Below are positions 35,832 through 64,000 of a stretch of DNA of 64,000 bases, in pieces. How positions within the stretch are numbered: position 1 is the stretch's first letter; the number at the start of each line of letters is the position of its first letter. The notes beneath the pieces are model-generated. The model was not told where the DNA came from. It did not search any database and saw only the letters and a list, made by a program, of their open reading frames with translations. A program made the position numbers and the translations under genes. This DNA is from Podarcis muralis (Eukaryota), in contig NC_135662.1 of assembly GCF_964188315.1 (NCBI RefSeq), positions 57,226,001 to 57,290,000 on the forward strand. Direction: 5' to 3'.

Positions 35832-37519
35832 TATATATAAACCCATGTGCCTATATTGCATGTTAAGGCTTTGAGTGAGGGAATTACTATTCTTATCTCT
35901 AGCTTGCTGAAAAACAGAGAGTTTGTTCCTTAGCAGGAATCAGCTGAGGGTACTTGTACTAGGCGGCCATTAGTAGCCCCTGGACCAAATTATAGCCACC
36001 TATATTTAATTGCATCCTGGGAATGGAATGGGGTTGCTGCCAATCAAAGTGGCCCTTTGGCAAAACTCATTGCTGACAAAATCTGTGGTGAAATATGGGG
36101 ACAGAGAGATGTAAACTATTCCAGTGCTGCAAGACAGCTGTTCCACCACCTCTCATGTGGGTTCCATTGCCATTCTAAGAGAATGAAGGAAGTCTTCATG
36201 GTGAGTTATGGCACCTCTTTTTCTAGAAAAATAGCACTGCCCACAGCCTTCCATTTGAACACATTGCTTCATACACCACAACTGATAATTATATGGAAGG
36301 GTCCATATAATTATATGGAAGGGCATTTTCACTTAAATGAATTCCTAATACTGTCTAATACTGTATTAGACAGAAGTCCAGTAAGCATATCATAGAAGGC
36401 AGTAACTAATGGAATCCCTCTTATGTGGGTTGGAGCGTACAGATAAGGCAGAATTTGGGTGTGATGTGTATGTTTTAGTGGGGTGAGAGTTGTATATTGT
36501 GACTCAAGATATGCCTTGCCGAGAGGGAGGCTGAAGATGGAAGGGTTCCTTGACTCTTTAAGAAGTTTTTTTAAATGTGCTGCTATGTTTTGAGGTCTTT
36601 AAGATTTTATTGTTTTATGTTAGAATATATTACATTGTTTCGTAGTTTTTCATATTCATTGTTTCTTGTATATACATATTGTATTTGTTATTTTCAAGAC
36701 CACAAGGTTACTGCCTTAATATTTAAACAATATTTAAATACTGTATAGGAAACAATAATTTGCTAGGTTTTTTTCCCTGATAAATCATCAAAAGTAGTGT
36801 ATGCTGTCCTCTTACGATGATCAAAATTAGTTGATGATGGTGTTTCTGTTAAAAGATAAGCAGCTAAATCTTGTGAAGTTTTTTGTCCTATAACTGGCTG
36901 CAGCTCATTTCTTTGTACAGAAGCTGACCGTCAGAATCAAAACTGATAAAAGGCTAATTTGATCGGCATAAAGCATTCTCAGACATTTTTAAAGAGGATC
37001 CCATTCCGCTCCAGCAACTAAGCATTTTTCTGCATCTTACATGATGAATACAGCTTTATCATTACATTGTAGTGTCTTATTGCCACAACTGGGCAAGAAA
37101 ATACACATGTAGAAAGTCATCATCTGTTGCAATTAAATCCTGTTGTAAATTAAATCCTCCTGGGTATATTCTTTTTCTTATGTATTTATGCATAAAATCT
37201 TTATAAATGTCTAAACACCACCAATGTCATAGTAGTATACAACAAAATTAAAACAAAGGAAATAGAAACAAACAAAGCCGATCTCTAAAGAGAAATCCGA
37301 TACTGCCTGTGAGTCAGCTCATCCTCCTGGGAATGCTTTTAGAAATCGATGTTTTAAGCACCCAACAAAATGTAGTTATTATCAGAGACTATCTAACTGT
37401 TAATATAGAATAATGCAGAATACTGAGACTCCAGTTTACATCCTTGGATATTTTCCATTGGCTTTATGAAAGCCTAGTTTTCTGTTTAACATTTCTCATC
37501 ATCCCCTTTTTTTCAGGGT

Positions 37520-40500
37520 ATGGGAGAAAAAGAACTGCCTGGTGTTTTGATCTGTGAAATAGGAGGTGCATTTGGTGTACTGGAGAGCCATGTAGAGTTC
37601 CTTAAGAAACACTTCAATCTCATCGCCCTGAGAGAGTTTCACAGAAACAAGGACGAACTTCGTGAAAAGATCAAGTCCATTTTTGTATTTGAGTGCAGAC
37701 CTCTCATTGACCGGGAACTTCTTGAAAGCTTGCCCAGCCTAAAGGTGGTAGCAAACTCAGGGGTAGGAGTGAATCATTTGGACTTGAAACTGATTTCGAG
37801 CTTTGGAGTAAAAGTCACCAACACCCCACATGCTGTTGCTGACTCCACAGCAGACATAGGCATGGCCTTAATGCTGGCATCTGCAAGAAGACTAGTGGAA
37901 GGTAAAGTCATTTTCTTTTGCAGTTTATGTAAGTTGTTGTGGACATATTTTAGATTTTGTGGGATGTAACTTGCACTAATATGTGCAGATTTTTAGTTCA
38001 CCACTCCCAGTATCAATCAGTCCTTGGATCAGCTGATCAATAGTTACATGATAATGCCCATGATATACTGATAAATAATAATACAGGTATTTTCTCCCTT
38101 TCCTAGCTATTCAGGTACCAAGTAGAAATTACAGTAACTTTTAAACTGAAAACTATGGAGTACTGTACTCCAAATTTTGGCTTGCTTTTAGTTTGTAACT
38201 GAAATTGAGTCAGAGCCAATATCCATTTAGCTCAACATTTTATGGGTTGAAGCTCTTCAGACTCTTGAACAGATGTTTCTCTATTCCTTCCATACAAGAT
38301 CCCTTAACTAGATTTAACAGTGATGGATTCTGCTGCCTTCTTCCTTAAATTTATTCCCACCTATATTTTTATGTGCTGCTTATTGTACAAATTCTAAGTA
38401 GAAATATGCCTTCCAGGGACTCCCAGTTAGAGCTGTCTTCTGATTTTCAATAACTATTGTAAATAGTGCAGGCATGTTTTCTAATTTCTGGAATAAAGTT
38501 GTTGTAACTACTAACACTCTTGTTTCTCATTCGCTGCTGTGTGGCTTCTGCTTTTGTTTTTTAGGTTGTCATATTGCAACATCTCCAGATACCACACATT
38601 TTGCGGTTGACTGGCTGGGAGTAGAAGTTACCCGGGCCACACTTGGTATCATTGGAATGGGTAGCATTGGGTATAAAGTAGCCAAGAGAGCAAAAGCTTT
38701 TGACATGAACATCCTTTATCACAACAGGAACCGTAGGTATATCTTTGATGAAGGTGTTGTACAGTGCAGCCCATGCAAAATTAACATGGGAGTAAGTCTC
38801 ATGGATCTCAGTGGGGCTTACTCCTGAGTAGACAGGTACAGGACCTCATCCTTAGTTATTTAACTTCCAATGTATTGGTAATCTAGGTTTCAATGTCTGT
38901 TGGAAGCAGTTGTTCGAAACTATCAATCTCTGCACCATGTTACAGTGTCAGTCTGTGTGTAGTCATGGAGGCTAAGGGGCTGAGACAAAAGCAATTCCTC
39001 CTTCACTTGAGACTATTTTCATCTCTACCATTAAAGTGAAAAAGTCACTGTATGGTAGGGTTGCCATATTTCAAGAGGTAAGAGTCTGGACACAAAAAGT
39101 TGTTGGGCTTCCTTAGGGCAATCACCCAATAGCCCCTCCTCCACTGCTGAGCCTGAGCTGGCCACACCAGAGCCCGGGTCACCAGAGACTGAACCAGAGC
39201 CACCCCACACACAAAATAACCCCCACCAAAAATCCAGGACATTTGCTTTAAAATGTAAAATCACACACCCCCGATGGGCATGTAGGACTCCCAAAAGAGG
39301 GCATGTCCGGGAATTACTGGACATATGGCAAACCTACGTGTATGGTGATTCTTCTTGCTAATATTTGAACACTGAAGTGGAAACAAGTGATTTTTAAAGA
39401 CATGATGATTTTCAGACTTACAATATGGTAAAACGACCACACACACACACACACCCTGCCTGTTCAGAATTAATATATAAATCAGGGTTTATTAGATTTT
39501 TGTCTTGAATCTCTTTTTGCAGCATGCACAGCGCGACACATACAAAATAAGGGTAATTCTGCTTCTCTCCAGTATTGGCAATCAACACCTAAAGCAGGGC
39601 ACACAAGAAGGCGCACTAGAAGACTAGAAGATCTTTTCAAAGATAGTAATCATTTTTTAAAAAACCACCGCTAGCCAGAAATACATGCAGGCTCCCATGT
39701 TCCTCAAGTTTTCAGATTCTCATGATCAGCCAGCATCCTTTAGCAATGCCCTTTGGCTGCCTTGAAAGGCACCATGCAAGGAGTAACACTGATGTTCACA
39801 TGGATGCTGCATTGAATTGGGAGGGATGCAGTGGACTTTAAATGTTGCCTTTTGACCTAAAATTTGGCTACCCATAGGAAAGAATCTACGAGGAGCTCCC
39901 AGCCCCTGTCAAGTATTTGTTCTGCCCGGGCAGCTCCAGAAATGAGAGTTACTAGTTGTCAGGGGTTCAGGAGCAGAGGCAAGGGCAAGGGAGGAAACAG
40001 AGAGCGAAGGGGAGGAGGCAGAAGAAAAGATGAGCGATGACGACGACCCGAGATCTCCGAGCCTGTCCAGTGAATCGGAGGATTCACAGAAAGGAGCACC
40101 AGTGGCCAGGGCAAGGGGGGAGTTTAGGGGGGCACCCCAGGAAGATAGAGCCAGAGGGGACTCAGAGGAGAGCAGTTGGAGATCGGGACCAGCGTCACCG
40201 CCAGAGAACAGAGAAGAGGAAGGGAGCCAGGGGGCAAGCGCTGGCAGCTCACAACAGGAGGGAGGGCACGAGTCAGGAGTGGCCACACCTCCATCTGGGA
40301 GCGAAGAGACGGTTAGACGGAAGGTGGAAGGTTGGGCGCGCGCGCCAAGTTCAAATGCACAGGAAGGCGACGCAGTAGGCAGCCCGGAAAGGGAGCCGGG
40401 TCCTAAAGCCCGGCGCAAGGAGACAGGAGGGTCCGGGGGGTCAGCGTCAGAAGAATCCCGGAAGGAAGAGACCCAGGGGGGCAGAGGGACCCAGAGAAGA

Positions 40501-43500
40501 ACAGTCAGGCGGAAAAGGTGGAGCAGGGCTAGGATATTAAGTTGGTGTACGAGGGGCGGAGATTCAGACGGAGCTTCGCCGGTCTAGCTACTAGACGTAG
40601 AGTTGCACGCAGCAGCTTGAGAATGGAAACTGTAACTCAATAAAGACTTTTACTTAATGACCGTGGGCTAGCGTGATCCTCTGTGAGCTGGGATCTGGAA
40701 GCAACCCTGACAGTAAGCTCCGTCTGACTGAATTGTGGGCATCTACAGCCTCGAGGAGAGGAGAGAAGCAGGTGCCTACTAGCGAGCTCACGAACGGCAG
40801 CCGACATGACGGCTGAACAGCAGATAGCGGAACTCAGAGAAGCAGTGTCACAGCTGAATGCCGAGGCTCTCGCATCCAGGAAGAGAGAGGAGGACGCAGC
40901 TGCCGCCTACAGGGATCTCCAGGTCAGGTTGGAAGTGCTTACGAAGCAAGGGCAACAGACACCCAAACCAGAGGGGATTGGGCTGGGGAGACGCACAGGC
41001 GGTCTGGTCTCTCACTTCGATGGGAACCTGCAACAGTATCCCAATTTTAAAGCAGACGTGCTGTGTGCACTGCAACTGCTGAGTAAAGATTTTAGAGATG
41101 AACAAGAGAAAGTGGGATTCATCATGTCTTATTTGCATGGGGATGCCAGAGCATGGCTGCGCAATTTGTGGAGGGATAACGATCCGGCGCTCCAAAATGC
41201 GAATGCCTTTATTAAAGCGATGGATGAGTGTTTTTTATCAAGCATTGACGTGGATCTTGCTAGGCAACAGATTCATGGACTGAAACAGGGAAGGGCCAGC
41301 GTACGGCAGTACCATGCCCGCTTTTTCGCCTTGGCCAGTGCCCTAGAATGGGACAGAGATGCGACTCCTGTAAGAGACCTGTTCTGGGAGGGATTAAACA
41401 GCTCTGTGAAAGATGAAATTGCGAGGGGGGAGAGACCCCGAACCACCCAGGAGGTCGTGCAGAGGGCGCTGGCAGTGGGGGTGCGGCTGGAAGGACGTCC
41501 GTGGAGCAGGGACGAAGGGCGTGGAGGGCGCGAAACAGCCAGGGGCTCCTCCTTCTTTCCCAGAGAAGCAGCGCGTACGCAATCCACGCCTCCGCCAGGA
41601 GGAGGAGCTGAACCTATGGAGGTTGGAGGTGCCAGGGCTCAGTCAGCAACCAGAGCCCTAGCACCAGCAGCAGTGAAAGCGAAGCCTCCTAGAGGGAACA
41701 GGAAGTGTTACGTCTGTGAGGAGCCAGGGCATATGGCGAAAGAGTGTCCCCAGAGGCTCAACAAGCTCACTGCAGCCTCAGCAATGGTGACTGCAGCAAC
41801 GCAGCAAGGAGGACCACAGCAGGGAAACGACGCAGTCTGGCTGGAGGAAGAGGCACTGGGGCCCAGCCAGACGTGTTAATGATGCAGTCCCCAGAGATTT
41901 TACAGCCCGTGAACCCCCTCCCGCCCAAACCAGTGGTGAGGCTCACCGCATCGCTCCAGCTGCCCAATGGCATCACCATGGACGTGCCAATCACCATTGA
42001 CTCAGGCAGCAATGCGGACTTTATAGGGCAGGACTTTGTCAACAAGCATGCTATACAGTTGCTGCCGGCCACACTGCCCCTGCAGGTTGTCACGGTGGAC
42101 GGCAGGGAGCTGCTAGGGGGGCAAGTGGTGCAGCAAACGCCACCAATGGTGATGCGACTTGGGAATCACAAAGAAGTCATAAGCTTCAACGTCACTCAAT
42201 TATCGGACACGCCCATTGTGTTGGGCATGAGTTGGCTGGACAAGCACAGCCCAACGCTGGCTTGGTACCAGAGGCAGCTGACCTTCGGCTCTTCTTTTTG
42301 TGCTGAACACTGCATCGTGCCCAGGCAGGAAGGAGAGGAAGAGGAGTCACAGCTGCTACTAGGCACGCTGCAAGCGATTCCCCACAAGTACGCAGAATTT
42401 TTGGAAGTTTTCTGCGAGAAGGAGGCAGACCGGCTACCACCTCACAGGCCATATGACTGCAAGATTGACCTGCTGCCAGGAGCGGCGCTGCCTAAGGGGA
42501 GACTGTATTCCATGTCAGAGGACGAACTGCAAGAACTCAAGGAGTTCATAGATCATAATTTGGAGCGCGGTTTCATCCGGGAGTCCAAGGCAGCGGGAGG
42601 CAGTCCGGTGTTCTTCGTTAAGAAGCGGGATACGCCCCAAAAGAGACTTGTAGTGGATTACAGGATCTTGAACAGTGTGACTAAGCCATCGGACTTCCCC
42701 ATGCCCCGAATTGACGACCTCCTCGCAAAGGTGCGGAAGGGCAGAGTGTTCACCAAGTTGGACCTGCGAGGGGCGTACAACCTCATTCGCATGCGGGAGG
42801 GAGATGAGTGGAAAACAGCCATGTTCACGCCACTGGGGACCTACGAATATAGAGTTATGCCGTTTGGATTGCAAAATGGCGCCCACGTTTTTCAAGCATT
42901 CATGCATCACGTGTTGGCGGGACTTCTCTACAAGACGTGCGTCTGTTTCTTAGATGACATCCTGATCTTTTCGGAGTCGCAACAGGAGCATGACAAACAC
43001 GTCAAGGAAGTGCTGAACAGGCTAAAGCAACATAGGCTCTACGCCAAGCTGGAGAAGTGCCAATTTGACGTGACGGAGGTGGATTTTCTGGGCTACAAGC
43101 TGTCTGACAAGGGGCTCGCCATGGACAGCGCCAAGGTTCGAGCGGTGTTGGATTGGAAGAGCCCACGCAACCGGAAGGAGGTCCAACGGTTTGTCGGCTT
43201 TGCGAACTTCTATCGCAAGTTTATCAAGGGCTTCGCTATGCAGACGGCGGCCATCACTGACACGCTTAGCTCCAAGAAAAAGAAGTTCATTTGGACAGAG
43301 CAGGCGGAACAGTCCTTTCAGGCACTCAAGCGTCTCTTCGCGTCGGAAGAGCAGCTGCTTCACGTCAACCCTAGCAAGCCGATGAGGGTGGAGACAGACG
43401 CCTCGGACAGAGCCGTGGGGGCGGTCCTGCTGCAGAAAGACCCGCAAGGGGTGTGGCGACCGGGAGCGTTTTACTCCAGGAAGCTCAGCAAGTCCGAGCA

Positions 43501-46500
43501 GAACTACACCATATGGGACAGGGAGTTGCTGGCCATTCATGCAGCGTTCAAGGCGTGGAGGCACTTTCTGATCGGCGCCAAGCACACGGTGCAGGTTTGC
43601 ACGGACCACAAGAACCTAGAGCACTGGCGCACGGCACAGTTCCTGAACCAGAGGCAGATACGTTGGGCTGAGTTCTTTGCGAACTTCGACTTCCGAATAG
43701 AGTATGTCCCGGGGGACACCAACATCATGGCGGACGCTCTCTCTCGTAAGCCACAGTATCTGGAGGACGCAACGCCAGCGGCCGCCATGCACATCTTCGC
43801 ACCAACAGTGTGGGCGTGCGCCGCGGCAACCGTGGACCTGGAGGCGGTGCGACGAGCGTTGCAGGGGGACTCCTTCGCACAAGCAAAGATGGCAGAGGTG
43901 CAAAGGGGCAAGGCAGCGGCCGACGGTTTCCAGCTAAGAGATGGATTGCTCATCCGTAAAGGGGCCATCTACGTGCCGGGAGACGAACTTCGCGCCAAGG
44001 TGCTGCAGCAGCTGCACGACGCGCCCACGGCTGGGCACTTCGGCAAGGAGAAGACGGTGGAATTAGTCGCCAGGGATTTCTGGTGGCCTGGAATGAGAGG
44101 GGAGGTCGCGGACTACGTGGCGAGGTGTGACACCTGCCAGAGGGCGAAGCCAGTGCATAGACCGCCGGCCGGACTGTTGGAACCGCTGCAAACTCCGGTC
44201 GAACCTTGGGAGAGAGTGGCCCTGGACTTTGTCACGGATCTGCCCAGCTCGAGGGGCAAGACGGCAGTGCTGGTGGTGGTGGACCTGTTTTCCAAGATGG
44301 CACATTTCATTCCGTGTGCGAAGGTGACCACGGCGGAGCAAACCGCCAAACTGTTCATAGACCACGTGTTCAAGGTTCACGGTCTGCCACGGTCTATTCT
44401 GTCCGACCGGGGGCGGCAGTTCATCTCGAATTTCTGGCAGAAGCTGATGGGCTTCCTGAACGTCAAGATCAACCTGGCGTCGGCGAGACACCCGCAGACC
44501 AACGGGCAAGCCGAGCGGGTCAATGCCATCATGCAGCAGTACTTGAGGTGTTATGCAAATCAACAGCCTGCGACGTGGGTGGATTACCTGCCGCTCGCCG
44601 AGTTCGCCTACAACAACACGAAGCACGTGTCCACGGGGATCACGCCGTTCTTCGCCAACAACGGGAGGCACCCCAGAACTTTTCCGGGACTGGAAAGGCT
44701 GGGGGAGGGGGAGCCGCAGACGGCAGATGCGTTCGCGTCGGAGCTGCAGGAAGTCCACGATCAGCTGAGGCGCCACCTGGAGCTGGCCAAGCACGCATAC
44801 AAGGTACAAGCGGACAAAAGTAGAAGGGTTGGCGAAGAGCTCCACGTGGGAGACTGGGTCTGGTTAGCAGCCCACGCAGTGCCGGCCAGGTCGTTGGCCA
44901 AGAAGAAACTAGGGCATAAGCAACTGGGGCCCTATCAAGTCGAAGAGCAGATCAACCCGGTGGCCTTCAGGCTGGCGCTTCCGGAGGGTTCCAGAATGCA
45001 TCCGGTGTTCCACAGATCGGTGCTCACTCCCTACAAGGCACCGCACAGGTTTCAGGAACCCGGAACGGCACCGAGTCCGGTCAGAGACAGAACAGGGCGC
45101 GCAGGAGGGGCACAGAAGGAGCGCATCAACGAAGTCACAGAGATTTTGGATTCCAGATGGGGGGAAGAAGGGGTAGAATACTTTCTCGCCAAGGAGGGCA
45201 CCCCGGCCAGTGCGAACAGCTGGGTGCCGGGCTACGCCTTGGACGAACCTCTGCTCAAAGACGAGTTTCATGCCCTCTTCCCACATAGACCAATGCCAGC
45301 AGACTTTTTCGACGACTGGCTTTTCACGCCCACGCTTTCGGCCAGCACGTTCCGGGGGTTCGACTCGGACGAGGACCCGACACGAGACGTCCGTTCCCCG
45401 GAGGGGTCACCCTCGGGATCTGCCTCAGAACCCTCGTATTGGTGGGACGACAGACCAGAGGAGCAGTGGCGCAGGAAGTGGCAAGAAGGTCCAGGACGAG
45501 CAACGCCGCCAGGAGGAAGTGAGGGAGAGACGGACATGGACGTTTTCGGGGACGACCCTGGTTTCGAGCACGGCGGCACAGAGATGGAAGCAGAGGTGAC
45601 CGTCGTCGACGAGAGCAGGGAGGAAGAACCGGAAGACTTCGGAAGGAGGCCCGCTACGGGAAGCGAACGGTACCCGACATTCGTCCCCTTGACACAGCAG
45701 CACCCAACTCCAGCACCGGAAGGAGGGGAAGGGGGAGTGGGGGGCTTCGAGGGGGGGATGGATGTCAGGGGTTCAGGAGCAGAGGCAAGGGCAAGGGAGG
45801 AAACAGAGAGCGAAGGGGAGGAGGCAGAAGAAAAGATGAGCGATGACGACGACCCGAGATCTCCGAGCCTTTCCAGTGAATCGGAGGATTCACAGAAAGG
45901 AGCACCAGTGGCCAGGGCAAGGGGGGAGTTTAGGGGGGCACCCCAGGAAGATAGAGCCAGAGGGGACTCAGAGGAGAGCAGTTGGAGATCGGGACCAGCG
46001 TCACCGCCAGAGAACAGAGAAGAGGAAGGGAGCCAGGGGGCAAGCGCTGGCAGCTCACAACAGGAGGGAGGGCACGAGTCAGGAGTGGCCACACCTCCAT
46101 CTGGGAGCGAAGAGACGGTTAGACGGAAGGTGGAAGGTTGGGCGCGCGCGCCAAGTTCAAATGCACAGGAAGGCGACGCAGTAGGCAGCCCGGAAAGGGA
46201 GCCGGGTCCTAAAGCCCGGCGCAAGGAGACAGGAGGGTCCGGGGGGTCAGCGTCAGAAGAATCCCGGAAGGAAGAGACCCAGGGGGGCAGAGGGACCCAG
46301 AGAAGAACAGTCAGGCGGAAAAGGTGGAGCAGGGCTAGGATATTAAGTTGGTGTACGAGGGGCGGAGATTCAGACGGAGCTTCGCCGGTCTAGCTACTAG
46401 ACGTAGAGTTGCACGCAGCAGCTTGAGAATGGAAACTGTAACTCAATAAAGACTTTTACTTAATGACCGTGGGCTAGCGTGATCCTCTGTGAGCTGGGAT

Positions 46501-48526
46501 CTGGAAGCAACCCTGACACTAGTATAAGTGACAATTGTCACATTTATTTCCTTCCAGGAAAGAGGAAGAAGAACAGGCAGTTGGTGCCACTTATTGCAGA
46601 AACATAGAAGACTTGCTCCAAGGGTCTGACTTTGTGATGCTGGTTGTGAATCTGACACCTGAGACACACAAGCTCATTGGGAAAAGAGAGCTGCAGCTGA
46701 TGAAACCCACGGCTACTCTCATCAACATCTGCAGAGGTAGGGGATGTGTGACTACCTAAATGTAAACTTCAGCTATATACATTTTTCAAATACCTATTTT
46801 TGCATATATTCCATCCTTTTCTCTGTATTCCTTTGTGTGAAAGGTGATACATTTCATCAGCACTAACAAAGGGTGAGGCCAACAACCAGTTTTCAGTGTC
46901 AAGAATCAATATGGATTATTTTGAAACCAGTAGCATTGGGAGTGGGATCAGGAGTATGGTACACAAGAAAAAGAAGGGGGAAATTCAGTGGTAAAGAAAC
47001 ATACTTTGGGTACATTCGATTTGGCACAGCTGTGGGTTTCATTACACCCTAATCCAGATGTAGAAGGAAGGAAGGATGGAAGAGCAATATCACATGAAGT
47101 GGCTTTATTGGTGAACTTTTGCTGCAAAGGAAATGGATTAAGGACTGGATTCATAAGCCTTTTTACTATTTCGGCTCAATCAAAACATGTTTGGAGAGAG
47201 AATGTGGAGATTCCCTTAGCTCCTTAAAATGTGTTCATTGACTGCAATCCTAAGCACACTTACCTAGGCATTAACTCCACTGGACACAATGTTGGCTTTT
47301 CAAGTGAACAATGCAAGAAACAAGCTTTCAGTCTTTATCATGAGCTACTTTATGACTTTCTGTCTGTATCAGGTGCAGTAGTTGATCAAGATGCCTTGGT
47401 AGAAGCGCTCAAAAATGGAGTTATTAAGGCTGCAGCTTTAGATGTGACTCACCCTGAACCATTGCCAAGGTAAAATATTACCAAAAAAAAACAAAACCCT
47501 TTATTGTTGTTGTTTTAGTTCTGACATGGAATAAGTATTATTCATTGGTCCAAAACTTCAACATTAAGGCATAGATGATCATGGTTTGTCTCTGTTGCCT
47601 CCTTTTTAATGCTTGATGTGTTCAGAAACCTGTGTGCATGGATAGTCATAAATATGCCTTCTTCCGAAGTCATTTTGTCATTTCTTCTGACTGACCTGAG
47701 TCTCAGAGTATTTGGATTTAAACAAACTGAAGTAACACAAGAAATCATGGTGGTAGATGTATTATATATAACCCATTCCAAGCTCTGTAGTGCAACAACA
47801 CAATAGCACTTGCGTTCAGGGCTGAGATAGCAATCTGTCCCTTGTCCCGAGGTCTCAAATGCTTTTCCTTTGCCATCTAACACTTTGAAACAAAACAACC
47901 TTCAGATTGTATAGTAGACGGCAAAATTTGTTTTGCTGCTTTAATTCATTTTCACTCAAACCTATACCGTGCATTTGAAATGCAAAAATAGAGTGGAATT
48001 GTAAGGGGGAGTTCTTGTTCTAAGCCTAGAACATAGACTGCATTGTTCTAAGCTTTCTATCTAACAATCTAACAGTACTGCCATACAAACAAGTTTATAG
48101 GTGATGAGAACTTTGATTCAGAGCACCAGTCACTCAAAAGCAGATCTTCATAGGGCTAACTCCTAAAATGATTTAGTAGATCATATCACACTTAATGATT
48201 GTGACCTACACAGTGTATAGAAGACATCTCAGTGGAAGCTAACTTACCACTAAACCCCGCCCCCCCCCCCAATTTGGAGTCTTTTTCAGTGCAGTCATAT
48301 AGCAATATAGTTACTTTGATCTGCCTGTGCCAGATGACTTCTGATTTTTCTTTTATGGCTTCCTTGCAGGGACCACCCATTATTGCAACTGAAGAATGTT
48401 ATTATAACTCCTCACATTGGAACTGCAACTGTGCAAGCCCTGCTTATGATGACAGAAGAAGCAGTGGAAAATATACAGGCTGTTCTCAATGACCTCCCCA
48501 TTCCTAGTGAAGTGATCCCCCAATAG
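37520..48526 (+). CDS. D-isomer-specific 2-hydroxyacid dehydrogenase (GRHPR/2-ketogluconate reductase-like), copy A, 328 aa
   Basis: Coding exons 37520-37901, 38565-38736, 46558-46736, 47373-47469, 48370-48526 (382/172/179/97/157 nt), all GT-AG and in frame. Rossmann [17 protein letters not shown], catalytic Arg (INICRG), Glu (PEPLP), His (TPHIGTAT); AATAAA at 48691. Confidence 0.93.
39056..39336. mobile_element. hAT-Blackjack-like MITE
   Basis: TIRs TAGGGTTGCCATAT / ATATGGCAAACCTA; imperfect TSD ctgtatgg/cgtgtatgg. Family assignment from recalled TIR type. Confidence 0.7.
39957..40712 (+). repeat. 5' LTR
   Basis: TG...CA termini; TATTAA at 40535-40540; AATAAA at 40639-40644; near-identical to 45763-46518. 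Confidence 0.97.
40806..41879 (+). CDS. gag: Retrotransposon Gag (coiled coil, capsid, CCHC nucleocapsid), 357 aa
   Basis: Open ORF; capsid-like FDGNLQQY...FIMSYLHGDARAW and LKQGRASVRQYHARF; zinc knuckle CYVCEEPGHMAKEC at 41706-41747. Confidence 0.93.
   Translation: MTAEQQIAELREAVSQLNAEALASRKREEDAAAAYRDLQVRLEVLTKQGQQTPKPEGIGLGRRTGGLVSHFDGNLQQYPNFKADVLCALQLLSKDFRDEQEKVGFIMSYLHGDARAWLRNLWRDNDPALQNANAFIKAMDECFLSSIDVDLARQQIHGLKQGRASVRQYHARFFALASALEWDRDATPVRDLFWEGLNSSVKDEIARGERPRTTQEVVQRALAVGVRLEGRPWSRDEGRGGRETARGSSFFPREAARTQSTPPPGGGAEPMEVGGARAQSATRALAPAAVKAKPPRGNRKCYVCEEPGHMAKECPQRLNKLTAASAMVTAATQQGGPQQGNDAVWLEEEALGPSQTC
41822..46393 (+). CDS. pol: Retrotransposon Pol (protease, RT, RNase H, integrase, chromodomain, long C-terminal extension), -1 frame relative to gag
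   Basis: Uninterrupted ORF: IDSGSN protease (41999), LPPHR...FFVKK...FLDD RT, TDASD/ELLAI/TDHKNL/ADALSR RNase H, HHCC + DDE integrase, GPY/F motif, chromodomain ~45125-45292; stop at 46391-46393 inside the 3' LTR. Confidence 0.95.
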   Translation, partial: GKRRSLAGGRGTGAQPDVLMMQSPEILQPVNPLPPKPVVRLTASLQLPNGITMDVPITIDSGSNADFIGQDFVNKHAIQLLPATLPLQVVTVDGRELLGGQVVQQTPPMVMRLGNHKEVISFNVTQLSDTPIVLGMSWLDKHSPTLAWYQRQLTFGSSFCAEHCIVPRQEGEEEESQLLLGTLQAIPHKYAEFLEVFCEKEADRLPPHRPYDCKIDLLPGAALPKGRLYSMSEDELQELKEFIDHNLERGFIRESKAAGGSPVFFVKKRDTPQKRLVVDYRILNSVTKPSDFPMPRIDDLLAKVRKGRVFTKLDLRGAYNLIRMREGDEWKTAMFTPLGTYEYRVMPFGLQNGAHVFQAFMHHVLAGLLYKTCVCFLDDILIFSESQQEHDKHVKEVLNRLKQHRLYAKLEKCQFDVTEVDFLGYKLSDKGLAMDSAKVRAVLDWKSPRNRKEVQRFVGFANFYRKFIKGFAMQTAAITDTLSSKKKKFIWTEQAEQSFQALKRLFASEEQLLHVNPSKPMRVETDASDRAVGAVLLQKDPQGVWRPGAFYSRKLSKSEQNYTIWDRELLAIHAAFKAWRHFLIGAKHTVQVCTDHKNLEHWRTAQFLNQRQIRWAEFFANFDFRIEYVPGDTNIMADALSRKPQYLEDATPAAAMHIFAPTVWACAAATVDLEAVRRALQGDSFAQAKMAEVQRGKAAADGFQLRDGLLIRKGAIYVPGDELRAKVLQQLHDAPTAGHFGKEKTVELVARDFWWPGMRGEVADYVARCDTCQRAKPVHRPPAGLLEPLQTPVEPWERVALDFVTDLPSSRGKTAVLVVVDLFSKMAHFIPCAKVTTAEQTAKLFIDHVFKVHGLPRSILSDRGRQFISNFWQKLMGFLNVKINLASARHPQTNGQAERVNAIMQQYLRCYANQQPATWVDYLPLAEFAYNNTKHVSTGITPFFANNGRHPRTFPGLERLGEGEPQTADAFASELQEVHDQLRRHLELAKHAYKVQADKSRRVGEELHVGDWVWLAAHAVPARSLAKKKLGHKQLGPYQVEEQINPVAFRLALPEGSRMHPVFHRSVLTPYKAPHRFQEPGTAPSPVRDRTGRAGGAQKERINEVTEILDSRWGEEGVEYFLAKEGTPASANSWVPGYALDEPLLKDEFHALFPHRPMPADFFDDWLFTPTLSASTFRGFDSDEDPTRDVRSPEGSPSGSASEPSYWWDDRPEEQWRRKWQEGPGRATPPGGSEGETDMDVFGDDPGFEHGGTEMEAEVTVVDESREEEPEDFGRRPATGSERYPTFVPLTQQHPTPAPEGGEGGVGGFEGGMDVRGSGAEARAREETESEGEEAEEKMSDDDDPRSPSLSSESEDSQKGAPVARARGEFRGAPQEDRARGDSEESSWRSGPASPPENREEEGSQGASAGSSQQEGGHESGVATPPSGSEETVRRKVEGWARAPSSNAQEGDAVGSPEREPGPKARRKETGGSGGSASEESRKEETQGGRGTQRRTVRRKRWSRARILSWCTRGGDSDGASPV
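45763..46518 (+). repeat. 3' LTR
   Basis: Copy of the 5' LTR, preceded by PPT GAGGGGGGGATGGA and followed by TSD CTAGT. Confidence 0.97.
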
Positions 48527-50693: not shown

Positions 50694-53600
50694 ATGCAAG
50701 ATCCCAAGTTGCCTCTCTTACTGATCAATGAAGTAGGTGGCACCTTGGGAGTCTTAGAAGCTCACGTGTCGTTTCTGAAGAAACACTTTCAACTTATCAC
50801 CATGAAGGAATTCCTCGAAAGCAAAGAACACTATCGTGCTCAAGTCCAAGCTATTTACTCGTGGTGGCATAAGCCAGTCATCGACAGGGAGCTGTTGAAC
50901 AGTCTGCCTAACTTAAAAGTGATTTCAAGTGCAGGAGTGGGTACCGATCACCTGGATTTGAAGCTGATCTCTGGGTTTGGAGTGAGAATCGCCAACACTC
51001 CTCATGCTGTCCACAGCACTACAGCAGACATTGGCATGGCCTTGCTGCTGGCAGCTGCCCGAAGACTCGTAGAAGGTAACACTGACAATACTGTGCACAT
51101 TTCTTTACAGTTACCCTTGTCTCATTTTCCTGAGCAGTGAGAGGTTCCAGGGCGGAGTACTTATCCAGATTTGATTCCCTTTGGAAGGAGGTAAATTGAG
51201 GCTGGTGTCAGGGATGAGGAGTCAGATTATTATTCAGGTGATGGAGCGGAGGACTCCAAAACAGAGGACATGTATGGCCAGACCCAGAAGTGCTGCTACC
51301 CAGTGAGCTCATGGAGTCAACATAAGCCTGGCCAGAAGAAGTGGCCCTGTCATCCTCTGACTTGGAAGACTCCATGGAAAGTGACGTGCAACCAGAGTCT
51401 GCCACGTTCTGTTGCAGGAAGAGATTAATGCTGAGACCTAGGCCCCTTTAAGCAAAGCAGCACCTTCCAGTATGGGTGAGGCTCACAATGGGGAGGTATC
51501 AACGCCGCTGATATACAGGAGAGAAGCTCGCTTTGTTCTTTGCTGAAACAACATACAGTAGGAGCTTTCTGTTCATAGAGCCTCTGCCTTCAACCTGAAC
51601 CCTTTTCTACCTAATATTGCATCAGGTTGCCCTGTATCCTACCTGAACCTCACCCTGCAGTTTGCAGACATTTTTGTAATGCTGAGTTGGTCTGTTAACA
51701 GGCCTAGTGCCTGAAGCCAGCTCCCGGTAGAGCAATTGCTTGCATATTTATACCCTGTTTGTGAATATGAATTTTTGTATGCAATATGACTTTTGTTGCG
51801 ATCTAAACAAATAATTTAACACTGATGTATAATGAAAAATCACCTATTTACAGCCTCAGCTGAATAACTCAGATTTCTTACAAAAATCACTCCCCCCCCT
51901 AGAATTCTGTTTTTAATGAACACCTCTTCTCCACCCGCCACCCCTTATTTTGTCATTTTGCAGGTTGCCAGATTGCTGTTTCCCCTGACACAGGCTATTT
52001 CTCTAATAACTGGTTAGGAGAGGAAGTCACTGGGGCAACTCTGGGTATCATTGGAATGGGAAGCATTGGGTATAAAATTGCTCAGAGAGCCAGAGCTTTT
52101 GAGATGAAAATTCTTTATCATAACAGGAACAGAAGGTAAAAATACACAGTTTGATACCATACCAAATAGAGTGTATCTTCACCTCTAAAGCTGTTTTATC
52201 CGCCAAATCTTTGTGCATGGGTATAGAGAAAGATCAGCTGGTCTTCAGAAGTGAACAAACACAGCTGTACTTTTCAACTCATATTTCTGCTTAATGTGAT
52301 GAAGAGAGGCTAGCCTATCATGTTGAGAAAAGGTGATCCATCCGGTGAGAAAAAGATAAGGATAAATAAGGGCCATTTCACACAAACAAATTTCAATTCT
52401 TAGTAAATGAGGAAACTGGCGAAGTAGCTTGTTCCAGCATTCACCCAAATCCTATGAGAATATGTGAAGTCTTCCTGCCAGTCTTCCAATCCTCCCACTT
52501 TTTTCTACAAGAGAGCCATGATTTAAGGTTGATATTCATCCTGAGTGATGTCTGAATTTGGCTTTTGCTGTGTTCCGTTTCATCCTCACTCTGGTTTTCT
52601 AAGCTGTTGCTTTGCTAGGGAGGAAACTAGATATTACAAAAACCACAAGGACTGCTGAAAAGAGCCATGAGCAAAGCTCTCTTCTTCCCTTCAGTAACAC
52701 ATTGTGGAACTTACCTAATGTACTTCAAATCAGGATATTAAAAGAACTTAACCTCATCATGATGGAGGGAGGGAGAACCTCTACTACATGTGGTTGCCAT
52801 TTTTGGTGTGTGTTTTAATAATGTCAGAGTTTGCTAGGAAAAAGTACACAGCTCAGCTCATTTTTATGCTAATTTAGATGGTTTTATTAAATCTCAGTGG
52901 CTTGATTGCAATATTTAAGTTTTTCAGCTTTGAAAAAAAGTATTTAAACCTTCTTAATTTCCTTGCTAGAAAGATAAATATCAATATAATATACAGGGGA
53001 GATTGGAACATTAATCTGATCTACTGTGTAGCCTTGAACTTAGTGGTACAGTGCACCCCTTGTTGTACAAGGGATCTGCACATTTGTGAATGCTAACCCC
53101 CCCCCCCCCCAAGAACTACCACTTGTTAAACAGATCATCCTTGTTGTTTTTTTCTGTCAGGAAAGAAGATGAAGAACAGGCTGTGGGTGCCTGCTATTGT
53201 GGGGCAATAGAAGACTTGCTCCAGCAGTCAGATTTTGTGATGCTGGTTGTAAATCTGACACCTCGGACGTACAAACTGATTGGGAAAAAAGAGTTGCAGC
53301 TGATGAAACCCACAGCTAGTCTTATAAATATCTCTAGAGGTAGGTCATAAAGAGCTGCTTGAAGAAAAATATTGAGTGTTAGGACTTCAAAGCACAGCAC
53401 TGTCTGAAAGTCGCTTTGCAAAAAGGCTTTCAAACAGCCCAGTATTCCCCTTTTGAGCAGTTGCTTTTTGAAGAAGCCCTGCATTCTTTATCACAACATG
53501 TGAATCTGTGCTCAGCTTAACATTGTAGTTTGTTTTGAGAGAAACAAACTACAAGTGTTGGCTCACAACTTGTGTTATACCAAGGCTCGTGGTCTGTTGC

Positions 53601-55782
53601 TCCCAGCTTGATGAATGGAGGTGTGTAATGAGATCAGTTCAGCAGCATGTACTTATGTTCTCCTTAACTCGGAAGGTGGTGGTCTCTCCTTCATTGGAGC
53701 TTTTTTAGCAGAGGCTGGATGGCCGTCTGTCATGGATGCTTTAGTTGAGATTCCTGCATTGCAGGGAATTAGACTAGAGGACCCTGTGGATGCCTTCCAA
53801 CTTTATGATTTGATGAAACCATGCAATGCACTGTTACCCAGCGGTTATCATAAGAACATGATTTCCACACAGGGCAAGTTGTAGACCAAGATATGCTTGT
53901 GGAAGCTCTTCAGACTGGTGTTATTAAAAGTGCCGCTATGGATGTCACTTATCCTGAACCACTGCCCAGGTAAACAACTATGTATTTATCTATTTTAAAA
54001 AATGAATGACTATAAGCGCATTGTAAAGACTGCAGGGAAGCATAGGAGTAACCAGTGCTAAAGTTCAGACTGACATCTCTGCCTTCTTCCACTGTATACT
54101 CTGGGAAGTAGTAGGAGAACCTATATAATACACATCATGCTTCCTTCCCAAATTGAAGCCATGAGGCAATGGAAGGACAGTGTGAGCAGGTGTTAAGTAA
54201 ATGTTTGAGTTAGTGCTGAAAGCTTTCATCTGCAGCTGGGATTCCTAACTGCATCTTAAAACATCCCTTGCCGCCCACCAAGGCCCCTGTCCCTCCCAAT
54301 TTGTTTAAAAAGTGTCTTTGGCTTTTTTGTTACGGTTCGTTTGGGAGGATTGCTTGATTTTTGTGTGTGAAGGGGAGTATGGTCTGCTTTTAATCTTTGT
54401 TTTATTTGGGGATTGGGGTGGAGCTTATTTTCAGATGTGCAGTTCTGAGCATGGCCAGTTTTTTTGCCTATAAAATGGGAATTTTATGCTGTTCCCGAGA
54501 GTTTGTAGATTTCCGTATGATCCTCCAGACCAAAAATAGTTGGGGACCCTGCAGTTCAAAAGGCAGTCCTATAATTGTAGTGATTATCCCTGCATCACAG
54601 TTATACAAGCATTATGCCAGTGCATTATAGTTGAGATCCCATGCACCTTTTATCACACAGATAAGACAGGAAAGGAGGAGCGTTATTCCATTCATAACAA
54701 ACAGCCAACCCTATTTCTCAGTGCAACATACATTGCTCACCTACACCCTCTTCCTCCCAAAGACATGGGCTTATGGTCAGTTGTCTGACCGCATAGATAG
54801 CTGACAGAGTACTCCACACATGAATGTATGGCATCTGTGTGATTGGAGCAAACATTTTGCGAAAGAGTGGGCCATATAGTCCAAGAAGAGGAGGCACTTC
54901 AGCCATGAGTTCATAATGTACAAGGAGCTATCCAGAAGTTTAGTGAGAATGAGCAACGCAATGGGAGACAGAGGGTGGGGTTTTGAGTTGTCTGGGGCTC
55001 CCCATTGACTCCAGTGTGAGTGTTTTCTTTTTGCATTACCTGTTCTGCAGTTATAATGGTGTGCTGGTGCCATGGACGCTACCAGCACCTGAGGTTCTCT
55101 CTCCTCCTACTTAATGCCCGAACTTCCTCAGTTCATGTTGGTGAATCAGTTAAACATGCATTAAGCAGCACCAACACAACAGTGATCCAACACCAATGTA
55201 ATCTACAACACTTGCATGTTTTTAGGCTTCTAACATTCAGGTGGGCTCAGGGGTGACCCAGTCTCTAACTGCGAGTGTAAGTCGTGGGTAGGATTGCTCT
55301 GTTAATCTTCTACTTTAGAAATATAAGTTACATAGATCTATAGTGATTTCTTTATACATAACTACACATTAACTATTATACTCTACTAAAGCACCTGTAT
55401 AATCAGAGGGAGTAAATATTAACCACAGGGGCTGAAACTGAAGGGTACACTTGCCTATTTTCAAGTCATTTGACTTTGGTACATTGCTAGAATATGGATG
55501 CTTGCCAAGTCAGATAACTAAAATCCTTCAAATGGTGGATAGCTCTAAGTACTTTTCCTTCATTTGCTTGAATGAATGCCACTTCCTATATTCATAACCT
55601 GTCTTTTTTATCTTCTTCTTTTCAGAGATCATCCGTTACTAAAATTAAAAAATGTTATCATAACACCACATGTTGGTATTAAAACACACAAAACTACTTT
55701 TATGATAACAGAGGAAGCAGTAAGCAATGTATTGGCAGCTCTTAATGGTCTCCCAATGCCCAGTGAAGTGTTTCCTGACTAA
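50694..55782 (+). CDS. D-isomer-specific 2-hydroxyacid dehydrogenase (GRHPR-like), copy B, 328 aa
   Basis: Coding exons 50694-51075, 51964-52135, 53161-53339, 53873-53969, 55626-55782 (same lengths as copy A), GT-AG, in frame. Motifs [28 protein letters not shown]; AATAAA at ~56103/56113. Confidence 0.93.
51206..51820 (+). mobile_element. Possible degenerate gypsy solo LTR / 3' remnant in copy B intron
   Basis: Starts TGTCAGGG like the intact element's LTR and is preceded by a purine-rich tract. GC-richer than the flanks, with acidic-coding 5' half. Right end and TSD not established. Confidence 0.4.
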
Positions 55783-58813: not shown

Positions 58814-58929
58814 ATCTTTATTATCCTTTTACTGACGCCTTTTCTCCCTTTTGCATCTTCTAAGGGGCTGCTTGTCTGTGTAGGAATTTCCTAAAGGCAA
58901 ACATTCTCACAAAACTAGCAAGCATACCA

Positions 58930-59450: not shown

Positions 59451-59689
59451 AATACAGCATTCAGAAGCATGGTGTGCAATAATATTTACAGCAGGGTCCA
59501 AATGTTCATCTTTTGATATGGTCAGGATTAGATTACAAAACGTCTAGTATGTTTCATGCTGGTGTTTAGTTTTTCTCCTTTATGTAAGTCACTAATCTGT
59601 TTCTCAACAGAATTTATACTAAGAACACTCCATTCTTGCTAATGCATCAGTAGTGGTATAGATTACCTGGACTCCCTTGGGAGGAAGGG

Positions 59690-59734
<45 letters not shown>
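59690..59734. repeat. (AAT)n microsatellite
   Basis: Tandem AAT units. Confidence 0.95.
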
Positions 59735-59735
<1 letters not shown>

Positions 59736-60050
59736 GCGAAAGCCTTGAACCTTGATGGGCACTTCCACCTTGATCTTATTCGTGTTTACTCAGAATTAAG
59801 CCCTGCTAAATTCAGTTGGGTTTACTCCCAAATTAAATCTGCATAGATTACACAATTTTGGACTGAACACTCCGGAATGCTAATTAGCAGTCTTGGATAT
59901 CCCCGCCCTTATTGTATAAAGGAACTACCCTGTTAATCACAATGAACTAGATAAAAACAATAATCTGAAGAGAAACACTGCTGTCTTCACATTAGTTTTA
60001 AAAAATGAGTTTTGATATATAAATTCTTTTTTCTATACTGTATACAGACC

Positions 60051-63000
60051 ATGGAAGAGAACAAGCATCCATATACACTGATAAATGTTATAGGAGGCAC
60101 AAATGGAGTATATGAAGACCATGTGGAGTTTCTGGAGAAACATTTTAAGCTCATTACCATGAAGGAATTTACTGAAAACAAGCAAGATCTTAGTCATAAA
60201 ATCAAAGCAATTTTTATGTGGTTTCACAAACCAGTGGTTGACAGGGATCTCCTGCAAAGCTTGCCTAATTTAAAGGTGATTGCAAACTGTGGCGTAGGCG
60301 TGGATCACTTGGACCTAAAACTGATCTCCAGCTTTGGCGTGAAAGTAGCAAACACCCCATTCGCAGTTTCCAATCCTACAGCAGACTTGGGGATGGCTTT
60401 GATGCTGGCTTCTGCCAGGAGGATTGTGGAAGGTACACTTTAGCTTTCCAATTAACTTGATTTAAAACACGGTGTGAATGCAACTGATTATGTATGGGTT
60501 TCTGTGCTTAAAAGTCATAGAGTGATCAGATAAAGGAAATTATTAAATGTCGTTTGTTGATAAAAAACATTTCCAAACAAATCCACCCTAGAAAACATAT
60601 TTGGTCTTACAAAACACCTGTCCTGTAATTACAGTCTATTGGATTTTGCAAACAATTTCTTGGACGAGGAAGTTTTTTTCTCATGGTCTACAAGCGCTTG
60701 ATTATATAGGCCTATAATCAGAATTAGGCATGTGCAGAGAGGTCTATCTGTAAAATGTCAACATAGTCAGCAGAATGTCTGTATAGGTTGGAGAATGCCT
60801 TGTTGAACTAGCAAACACATGGATAAACCTGTTCTACATCATTTCCAATATACATAAAATATACAGCCTAGCTGCTGAATACTGAAAGTGGGTCACAGAT
60901 AATTGCACTCCCACAGATGTTTGATTTTGATCCACTCGCACAGGTATCCTTTGAAGGATGTGATGACATCCTGCTGTTGGTAGAACTATATCTTCATATC
61001 TGTTAATTTTATATATTTATACTACGTTCCAGCTCAGATTAAGAACTCCCACAGGCAAGTTCACAACAGTCCATGTCTTAGTTCGCAAAATCAGAGAGCA
61101 GTGAAAGACAAAGTAAAATGTTTAGAACAAAAATAATAGCTAGCAAGATTAAAACACACTGGTATCATGACATAATAAAAATGTCTTAATTGTCAAAAAG
61201 AGGAGGGGGGCAGATAAACAGCCCTATGGAGAGATTTCCATAATTGGGGTTCTGTCAATGAAAAGGCCCTACCCCAAACATCCCCACCAATCACTCCTCG
61301 GATGAGTATAACTATATTTGGGCTAAAAAGGTGTGTGCCTTCAAGGAAGATTTGGGACCTGGTATGTAGTATTTTAGAAATCAAAGCAGTTGTTGTTGTT
61401 CAAATACAGCTCAGAGCTCTTAAAACCAGAGCAATTTTCCAAGTTGGGATGGGCATCACACCGTATGTTTGTTAGCTGATCTCCTAAAACACTGCAAACC
61501 CTCATTTTCTTTTGTCTGTCTGAATTTCTAGGTCATCAGATTGCAGTTTCTCCTGACACTAAATGTTTTATGGCTGACTGGTTAGGAGAAGAAATTAACA
61601 GTGCAACGCTGGGGATCATTGGAATGGGTGCTATTGGGTACAAAGTGGCCCAGAGAGCCAGAGCTTTTGAAATGAACATTCTTTATCATAATAGGAACCG
61701 GAGGTAAACCTCTGCCTGATCTCGGTGTTTTAATCTGATTTTACCCACCTGTTAACTTTAGCATTTATTTTGTGACTGTCTGCATTAATCCATTGTGCTT
61801 TAACTGAGTTTCCCTGGACTGCCTAAACATTTACTGTGAATGTTAATGGAGTACCTATTAAACAAGGCCTACTTCTCTGAGAAGTGACAAGGTCATGAGT
61901 AGGAATAGAAAGATCTGTCAATTTCCATTCTTTCAGTTTTTCAATCTTACATTTGGTTCTCTATATCTCTGCAACAATTGGGGAATTATTACTTTTTAAT
62001 TTTCCTCATGAGAATTCATCAGTATTATAATGCAAATTTTCCTGGGTGAAGACATTTTGGATTAAAGTACACATTTTTGCAAGCAATTTTTCCTAACACA
62101 ATGCAGTTTTAATGTTAGTTTAACTAATATATTCAGTTTTATGCACACTTTCTCCTAATATACAGTATTCATTTTTGCTAACATTGTTTGTGCATTGCAC
62201 AATTCAGACAAGTACAAATTCCCAAGGATAGCTGTATTTTCATTTCACCAATCCTTTCTAATATCATCTCCATGTCTAGTCACTGGGCTGGTCTTACTTA
62301 GGTTTGATTAGTTTTGGAAGGAAGAGGTCACGGGGGACTTAAGGTGTTTTGGTAATATCTGGGTTTGTTTACAAATATAAAATGTGATCGTAGGTGGAAG
62401 CAGATAGCACAGGACATCCATAGGGAAGAAGTTTTCCCAAATGCTTTTTTCACTTACAGCTCGGCTGTTTTACTGTCCCCCCCCACCGCCTCCTCCAAAA
62501 TCCTGCCTTTTTACACACCTTAGCTGGGAGGAGGAAGAAATAGCACTTATTCCGCCCCCCCCCCCCAGCTCCTCATAAATTTCTGTTTTGTAGCCCTGAA
62601 TGCTGGTTGTGACTCGGAGACATTCTTGCAACCTCCCTTCTCCCAAAAAGGATGTATATTGCTGGTACACTAGCTTTAATTTGGCAAAAGCACTTCTAGG
62701 TAGGGTTGCTATATTTCAAAATGTGAAAATCTGGACACCTTTTTTTTTTTTTTTTTGCAAAGTTGTTGAGATAGTTTTGGGATTTTTTTTGGCCAGCTTT
62801 TTTTCCCCAAAGTCTCAAAAAAAGAAGATGTTTTGAACTATTATAAAGGAAATTAACCAAAATTTACACTTCTGACATGGGTTGCCATATGTCCGGATGT
62901 TCCCGGACCTGTTTCCTATAGCCGAATCCCAGCTATGTCCGGGAAATTCCGGACGTATGGCAACTCCTGTCACCTGTATATCCAGAGGTAATGCTGGTTC

Positions 63001-64000
63001 CAGGAGAACGCCCAAAAAATGTACAGTTCCATCCAGAAGAACCTGAAAGTTTGTTCCTGGATTAGTAGTTCCACTCCTAGTTTGTATCTTCATTAAAAAA
63101 AAAAAGTTTCAGTTTATTATTAGTCCTTCACTGATCCTTGACAAAAGGTTCAGCAATTTGTTGGGAAAGGAAAGAAAGAACTAGGTATCATCTGTATATT
63201 GCTGACACTAAAACTCACATCCCCAGATGACATCTCCTGGTGGTTTCATGAAAATGTTTAACGACAATCTACCGTATGTGCTATTTTTGTTAAATGCTTA
63301 ACTAGAGCTAAATGTTTGTTTCCTGCAGGAATGAGGCTGATGAACAGGCTGTTGGTGCTGTTTATTGCCCAAAGTTGGAAGACTTACTCCAGCGTTCTGA
63401 CTTTGTCATACTGACTGTGAACCTGTCACCTCAAACACAAAAACTGATTGGAAGAAAGGAGTTGGAACTCATGAAACCCACTGCTACTCTTATCAACATC
63501 TCTAGAGGTAGGATACTGAATCATGTTTGGGCAGTAAACCACATTTTCCTGGAAAGAGGCTCTAGACTGACAACGCTCCATTACTTTGTGGGGGTCAACA
63601 CACAAGAATGAGAGATGTTGGGAGAAATCATGTCATCTCCAGCAACTGTCCACTGCACTTGTTTCAGGAGATTAGTCTCCTCCTTTTTAGGCACTGTAGA
63701 GCTAGATAAGCCTCTCCCAACCTGGTGTCCTTAAAATGTTTTGGAGCACAAATCTCATCCATTCCAGCAGGCAGCATAGAGTGGTCCATGGGTAAGGGGT
63801 TATGGGAGTTCTAGCCCAAACCTGGAGGGCACCAGATTGGGAAAGACTGAGGTAGATTGGAACAGATACTGGACACACACTATCGTTCTGCAGAAATCTT
63901 GGCTGATGGCATTTCTATATTGCTGTCTATATTGCAGTCTATGTTTTGGTTCAAATGAAACAGTACGATTTTTCATTTAGGTCAAGTGGTTGATCAAGAT
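60051..64000 (+). CDS. D-isomer-specific 2-hydroxyacid dehydrogenase (GRHPR-like), copy C, 3' end beyond window
   Basis: Coding exons 60051-60432, 61532-61703, 63329-63507 (382/172/179 nt) and start of next exon at 63981 (GQVVDQD); GT-AG, in frame; GIIGMGAIG, INISRG. Confidence 0.92.
62701..62968. mobile_element. hAT-Blackjack-like MITE remnants
   Basis: TAGGGTTGCTATATTTCAA...TCTGGACAC start similar to 39056; inner GGGTTGCCATATGTCCGG...CCGGACGTATGGCAAC inverted unit. Confidence 0.6.

Follow-up and report, generated by a model that had tools for sequence, protein, structure and literature searches.

Three tandem genes of a putative keto-acid reductase family between TXNL4A and RBFA in Podarcis muralis

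The human genome contains four paralogues of the 2-hydroxyacid dehydrogenase (2HADH) superfamily (PMC6303947). Among the enzymes of the GHRB subfamily, which are promiscuous, substrate choice has been linked to several features of the active site: a Gly-Ser motif following the catalytic His, with Ser296 of GRHPR binding the hydroxyl group of hydroxypyruvate; an Arg-x-x-Met motif in helix α5, which blocks larger substituents at C2 and is present in most GHRB members; a Trp from the partner subunit (Trp141 of GRHPR) that reaches into the pocket; and the β3-α3 loop (PMC6303947). The Gly-Ser motif correlates with the substrate but does not define the subfamily (PMC6303947). Here we describe three genes, A, B and C, on the forward strand of a 64,000-nucleotide stretch of Podarcis muralis chromosome OZ076961.1 (the whole stretch analysed, called the window below; coordinates are positions within it). 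We think it likely that they are three ancient tandem paralogues of a deuterostome-wide, putative keto-acid reductase family located between TXNL4A and RBFA.

The genes themselves are no discovery, being already part of the public annotation of Podarcis muralis. What is noteworthy is a whole enzyme family that extends from sea urchins to lemurs, lies beside RBFA, and for which we found no published biochemistry. Its absence from the usual model mammals seems to be why it has been overlooked. Reptiles and birds have two or three old copies, whose pockets differ at residues known to set substrate choice in relatives. The question raised is what these reductases reduce, and what anthropoids and murid rodents gave up. 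The family may bear on the handling of glyoxylate and oxalate across vertebrates.

Gene models and relation to known enzymes

The models of all three genes were rebuilt from the sequence and have canonical GT/AG splice sites and open frames. A and B share exon lengths of 382, 172, 179, 97 and 157 nt; C has the same first three, after which the window ends. Every internal junction is of the AG...GT type, and A and B each consist of 328 codons plus a stop codon, with no internal stop. The joined spliced models, which were used for the frame check, identities, rate ratios, alignments and trees, give protein identities of 0.70 (A/B), 0.69 (A/C) and 0.70 (B/C). An earlier note on this DNA had described three same-strand paralogues with matching exon lengths, and the rebuilt models, junctions and frames confirm this; the peptide segments it quoted (IFVFECRP, IYSWWHKP and others) are all found in the translations.

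The exon of A at 37517..37901 (cag acceptor at 37514-37516, internal ATG at 37520) is matched by PF00389 with E=2e-16 and encodes the substrate-binding domain with the β3-α3, β4-α4 and β5-αA loops. The 172-nt exon (38565..38736; PF02826) carries the dimer loop (F140/W144), the GxGxxG motif (residues 158-163) and the sequence ILYHNRNRR. The 179-nt exon (46558..46736) terminates at the catalytic Arg244, the 97-nt exon (47373..47469) contains Asp268 and Glu273, and the last coding exon (48370..48526) provides His292 and the βG-α5 loop, PHIGTAT...ALLMM, before a TAG stop. The first coding exon of B (50694..51075, with the ATG at 50694) is covered by RNA contigs. The next three (51964..52135, 53161..53339 and 53873..53969) were placed by reading of the sequence, by Pfam and by RNA contigs, and the last (55626..55782), likewise covered by RNA contigs, encodes His292 and the βG-α5 loop PHVGIKT and ends with TAA. 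C begins with an exon at 60051..60432 that is 100% identical to the public protein P0285, followed by exons at 61532..61703 (sequence reading and P0285 match) and 63329..63507; its final two exons lie beyond the window.

Scanned exon by exon, A and B match PF00389 in their first exon and consecutive portions of PF02826 in the remaining exons, in order, which is the domain layout of the 2HADH superfamily (PF00389 flanking PF02826). The catalytic residues R244, E273 and H292 and the motif G158-x-G160-x-x-G163 are present in A and B, and the same residues occur in C as represented by P0285. The intact Rossmann motif and catalytic Arg reported earlier are therefore upheld; the catalytic Glu and His had been seen in A and B only because C runs past the end of the window.

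Local BLAST showed A to be 100% identical to residues 58-385 of P0219, and the 244 residues of C that are encoded in the window to be 100% identical to P0285. Both proteins are titled 'putative 2-ketogluconate reductase isoform X1 [Podarcis muralis]', so the public entries for A and C are the very same genes; B is annotated as well. Calling the three genes orphans, as the earlier note did, was thus mistaken as far as annotation goes. For full-length comparisons we used P0219:58-385 for A and P0285 for C; B was searched exon by exon only. The query of the main protein search was the 127-residue exon of A, and the proteins that it returned then served as full-length queries.

Transcript evidence was obtained for B. 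RNA contigs from three studies, collected over the region 50600-55900, contain the joints 51075/51964, 52135/53161, 53339/53873 and 53969/55626, all of them GT..AG and all equal to the modelled exon borders after a stated cut offset of +2 or +3. A single contig of 1789 nt contains all four. These contigs show that B is transcribed and that its splicing follows the model exactly. One raw RNA-seq run contributed only a few reads, on the first exon. At its 5' end, the 1789-nt contig reaches 491 nt past 50600, so B has a long 5' untranslated region or additional upstream exons.

Among proteins of known structure, the best match to full-length A and C is 9m0t, a 'probable 2-ketogluconate reductase' similar to YvcT (224 and 210 bits, respectively). 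Pyrococcus glyoxylate reductases score 203-224 bits against A and C, and human GRHPR scores 186 and 183 bits. The closest characterised relatives are all of the GHRB subfamily: the 9m0t chain, the Pyrococcus glyoxylate reductases, the Thermus glycerate dehydrogenase/glyoxylate reductase 2cuk and human GRHPR. The archaeal enzymes (Pyrococcus; 2dbq, 6bii, 5aov) are the best or near-best solved relatives over nearly the full length and have the Arg-Glu-His triad and the GxGxxG motif in common with the window genes; their dimer loop is shorter by ~5 residues. Exon-by-exon family scans placed the superfamily but not the subfamily: the summed exon scores were ~217 for NCBIfam PRK13243, the archaeal glyoxylate reductase model (cut-off 455), and ~182 for PRK15409, the GhrB model (cut-off 492), far below the equivalog level in both cases, although these sums are rough given that exons were scored apart.

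That the copies are plain orthologues of GRHPR, or recent duplicates of it, is extremely improbable. Human GRHPR (2gcg, 2h1s) is a clear homologue of similar length, with the same subfamily membership, the same catalytic residues and the same C-terminal pattern PEPLP...HPLL...PH-G, and several sources label members of the family 'glyoxylate reductase/hydroxypyruvate reductase'. Yet its 183-186 bits lie below those of the archaeal and bacterial GHRB enzymes (203-224 bits) and far below those between the window genes and their true orthologues (490-670 bits overall, 490-590 bits for other reptiles), and we rejected GRHPR orthology on these scores. Moreover, human GRHPR has a different locus and exon structure, the present family has a conserved locus of its own beside RBFA from ray to tarsier, and the two coexist in mammals. 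By sequence, A, B and C are best placed as paralogues of GRHPR within the broad GHRB subfamily, and the separation from true GRHPR drawn in the earlier note holds.

Members of the family go by the public names 'probable 2-ketogluconate reductase', 'glyoxylate/hydroxypyruvate reductase B-like', zgc:136493 and 2KTGRL. The name '2-ketogluconate reductase' traces to YvcT of B. subtilis, which is itself called just 'probable', and so says nothing tested about function. The vertebrate proteins bearing it (RefSeq LOC genes, chicken 2KTGRL, pig LOC100157017 and zgc:136493-type entries) agree with the window genes in exon-coded domains, locus and position in the tree.

Age, selection and distribution

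A careful tree was built from 77 proteins (support given as ultrafast bootstrap/Shimodaira-Hasegawa-like approximate likelihood ratio test, SH-aLRT). It contains a vertebrate clade (100/99), a tetrapod clade (100/99) and a single mammal clade (99/96). The A clade (100/99) comprises turtles, crocodile, birds, tuatara and squamates, the B clade (100/97) turtles and squamates, and A and B group together (100/97). The squamate C sequences form a clade (100/99), which crocodilian, turtle and bird genes join in an enlarged sequence set (SH-aLRT 73-87). As each paralogue clade spans these orders, the tree implies that A, B and C all existed before lepidosaurs separated from turtles and archosaurs. 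The joint clade of sauropsid A, B and C has a support of 78/21, and of 51 in the enlarged tree, so that the duplications may fall on either side of the split from mammals. Orthology to the vertebrate 'probable 2-ketogluconate reductase' family is supported both by the tree (100/99) and by adjacency to RBFA in Podarcis and tarsier.

Among the window copies, synonymous divergence (dS) is saturated, at 1.16-1.88, and the ratio of nonsynonymous to synonymous divergence (dN/dS) is 0.11-0.18. Such ratios at saturated dS indicate long-term purifying selection on A, B and C rather than neutral drift.

An alternative is that one or more copies are dead or dying. The chief candidate would be A, whose second intron is occupied by a long terminal repeat (LTR) retroelement of 6.56 kb at 39957..46518, in sense orientation (+) to the gene. 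The element has TG...CA ends, a 5-nt target duplication (CTAGT) and a 1549-codon open frame. Its two LTRs, at 39957-40712 and 45763-46518, are 756 nt each and 100% identical, which points to a very recent insertion, and its 3' end lies 39 nt before the exon at 46558. A gene split by a very young element of about 6.6 kb, together with a public record that holds no transcript contig encoding exactly A or C, speaks for decay. Against it, the frames are all open and the splice sites all canonical, dN/dS is low, each copy has conserved orthologues in other orders, and B is demonstrably spliced; with identical LTRs, the insertion would be too recent for decay to show. We regard this alternative as unlikely.

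The family is widespread. We found it in sharks, rays, coelacanth (three copies on one contig), lungfish, ray-finned fishes, frogs and newt; in turtles, crocodilians, birds, tuatara and squamates; and in marsupials, often as two copies. Among placental mammals it is spread over most orders, including Xenarthra (sloth, armadillo), Afrotheria (elephant, dugong, tenrec, aardvark), Carnivora (cats, hyaenas), many bats, artiodactyls (pig, peccary, hippo, bison, deer, camel), lagomorphs (pika, rabbit), several rodents (kangaroo rats, gundi, ground squirrel), tree shrew, shrew, lemurs, galago and tarsier. Invertebrate deuterostomes have members too, namely tunicate, amphioxus, sea urchins and sea cucumber. 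For pig, full-length mRNA contigs, which carry no synteny information, are on record, and the protein appears in a muscle proteome (PMC11083045). One marsupial sequence, P0014 of Dromiciops gliroides, has NTK in place of NTP, a serine where GxGxxG would have its third glycine, and unrelated sequence after NRNR; it could reflect gene decay or an inaccurate model.

In tarsier, the family member is found 5 kb upstream of a gene that encodes an RBFA domain. Fused dehydrogenase-RBFA gene models exist in Mobula (P0153-P0159) and Camelus bactrianus (P0402), which suggests read-through transcripts or merged models at the same RBFA-adjacent locus. The position beside RBFA is thus conserved from ray to tarsier, on the evidence of Podarcis, tarsier and the fused models in ray and camel.

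With the tarsier protein as query, there was no monkey, ape, human, mouse or rat protein among the best 120 hits, which extended down to 66% identity. Orthologues in these species would be expected near the top. The result fits the count of four human 2HADH paralogues and the listing of chicken 2KTGRL, on chromosome 2, among genes without a human counterpart (PMC6839265). Absence of the family from human is thus indirectly supported, in line with the earlier note's claim that human has no such gene at this locus.

The same note had gone further and proposed a non-mammalian orphan subfamily of keto-acid reductases whose three copies had specialised on different substrates. As a whole, this view is improbable. 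The genes are annotated public proteins, and the family is found in marsupials and most placental orders, in tarsier beside RBFA, as well as in tunicate, amphioxus and echinoderms, so that 'non-mammalian' has to be given up. On its side are the tarsier search and the pocket loops described below, which genuinely differ among the paralogues and stay conserved inside each paralogue clade, with fixed differences between A and B enriched in the active site. We also considered, and dropped, a link with vitamin-C synthesis (GULO), since the family is found in teleosts, bats and tarsier, all of which are groups without GULO.

Substrate pocket, cofactor site and leader exon

The family alignment shows that the motif PH-x-G-S...R-x-x-M has been kept in C, mammals, frog and tunicate. 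After the catalytic His, C and mammals both have PH-x-G-S-A-T, and helix α5 reads A-R-Y-L-M-M in C and A-R-x-Q-M-M in mammals. The archaeal glyoxylate reductases also have the Gly-Ser and Arg-x-x-Met motifs, which they share with C but not with A or B. Throughout the A clade, the sequence after the His is G-T-A-T and the Arg is replaced by Ile, Thr or Leu (ALLMM in Podarcis A). In all of the B clade, the corresponding sequence is G-[I/V/A/S]-[K/R]-T, again without Arg at the motif position; B itself reads T-F-M-I. The β3-α3 loop is F-x-[FY]-E-[CR]-R-P in A, with a conserved Glu, W-W-H-K-P in B and W-[FY]-[HY]-K-P in C. In the β5-αA loop, A has x-D-S-T-A, as in GRHPR, and B and C carry Ser or Asn there. 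W144 is conserved in tetrapods; in HMMER alignments to the solved relatives, it pairs with one or the other of two Trp positions. Phe140, rather than W144, may be the equivalent of Trp141 in GRHPR.

The paralogue-specific differences noticed earlier thus fall in loops that are known to set substrate choice (PMC6303947). Their concentration there, however, stands only in part. Variable sites among A, B and C make up 20/37 positions in the loops and 77/207 outside (odds ratio 2.0, p=0.04), a modest excess. Differences fixed between the A and B clades are more clearly enriched, at 7/51 in five active-site loops, with boundaries set by ourselves, compared to 8/277 elsewhere (p=0.0035). The other type-II contrasts gave no significant loop enrichment.

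The cofactor loop is nearly invariant from tunicate to mammals, with the sequence LYHNRNRR. It has no Asp after βB and contains the basic run HNRNRR, which is compatible with a predicted site for reduced nicotinamide adenine dinucleotide phosphate (NADPH). The βB-αD loop of E. coli GhrB, also a GHRB member, is of the same NADPH type, lacking an acidic residue, and the earlier assignment of this loop type to the window genes agrees with the family-wide pattern. The corresponding loop of human GRHPR is LYTGRQPR.

A, B and C most likely are dimeric, NADPH-preferring reductases that would convert 2-oxo acids into (R)-2-hydroxy acids. Following the mechanism of the family, the hydride would be delivered from the nicotinamide and the proton from His292, held by Glu273, while the carboxylate and carbonyl groups would be held by Arg244 and the main chain of the β4-α4 loop. 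It is plausible that the three proteins have different substrates, given that C keeps Gly-Ser and Arg-x-x-Met, that A has Gly-Thr and B Gly-Ile-Lys, and that the β3-α3 loops of A and B are clade-specific. C would be a glyoxylate/hydroxypyruvate-type reductase, having, as in mammals, both motifs. A, with Gly-Thr, no Arg at the motif position and Glu58 in the β3-α3 loop, may accept a different 2-oxo acid, and so may B, with Gly-Ile-Lys and the WWHKP loop.

The long isoform of A has an additional coding exon at 35347..35514 (+), followed by a GT donor at 35515 and joined to 37517; tblastn with residues 1-56 of P0219 located it with 100% identity. This modifies the earlier description of a 382-nt first exon: the length was right, but in the long isoform the exon in question is an internal one that starts at 37517 and is preceded by the leader exon. 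No entry for the short isoform was found in a look-up of the public record. The leader adds 56 residues (MLRVKAF...) with a net charge of +6 and a single acidic residue, and is recognisably conserved in squamates, turtles and birds. On the basis of charge and conservation, the chances that it is a mitochondrial presequence, directing the long isoform to mitochondria, appear evenly balanced. In sea turtles, a nearly identical leader is annotated before a B-type body (P0231, Lepidochelys) and before an A-type body (P0242, Natator); this would be explained by a single 5' exon shared, through splicing, between two tandem genes, or by an artefact of annotation.

Combining these points, we tentatively put forward a joint reading, which we hold to be possible rather than probable. 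The family would be a fifth animal 2-hydroxyacid dehydrogenase, unstudied through its loss in mice, rats and anthropoids, humans included. Its division among sauropsids would go back more than about 250 million years and would have produced three functionally distinct enzymes: C canonical and of the glyoxylate/hydroxypyruvate type, A mitochondrially targeted and B lysine-bearing, with A and B acting on other 2-oxo acids.

Several observations weigh against our main explanation, that of ancient tandem paralogues acting as NADPH-preferring keto-acid reductases. The support for a common sauropsid origin of A, B and C is weak. Transcript evidence is confined to B among the three copies, and the LTR element 39 nt before the exon at 46558 may interfere with how A is spliced in this haplotype. 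In hydrophobic moment, the leader does not exceed a control stretch, which leaves charge and conservation as the only basis of the mitochondrial idea. The enrichment in the pocket loops is confined to the A versus B contrast and was obtained with loop boundaries chosen by the analyst. Finally, literature searches found no functional study or enzyme assay of an animal or vertebrate member of the family.

Another explanation is that the three proteins are redundant glyoxylate/hydroxypyruvate reductases, retained for differences in tissue, isoform or subcellular site (mitochondrial versus cytosolic) and not in substrate. The catalytic residues and the cofactor loop are identical across A, B and C, only A has a leader exon, GHRB enzymes are promiscuous (PMC6303947), and most type-II contrasts lack enrichment in the pocket loops. 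However, the Gly-Ser and Arg-x-x-Met motifs, which correlate with a preference for hydroxypyruvate and small substrates, are gone from A and B, and each replacement has persisted across orders for hundreds of millions of years. We consider redundancy less likely than not.

Surroundings of the array

In assembly GCA_964188315.1, the public record for OZ076961.1 gives the gene order TXNL4A/DIM1 (-), A (385 residues), B (328 residues), C (327 residues) and RBFA. TXNL4A was located in the window at ~28320..32830 on the reverse strand (-) by peptide motifs, and a called gene with PF02966:DIM1 adjoins A in the public record. The two genes are arranged head-to-head. The public gene range of A begins at ~34281, and given this start and the head-to-head layout, TXNL4A and A may have a common promoter region. 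Extrapolated from the public record to window coordinates, C ends at ~66307 and RBFA begins at ~68752, both past the end of the window. At lower coordinates, peptide motifs located an SLC66A2/PQLC1-like exon at 15073-15306 on the reverse strand (-).

Within intron 3 of B, at 53609-53785 (...GGGTTGGACTAGATGACCC...), the summed depth of contigs is close to 10,000 in three runs, and there are many loose ends. The segment resembles a very abundant dispersed repeat transcribed from numerous genomic sites.

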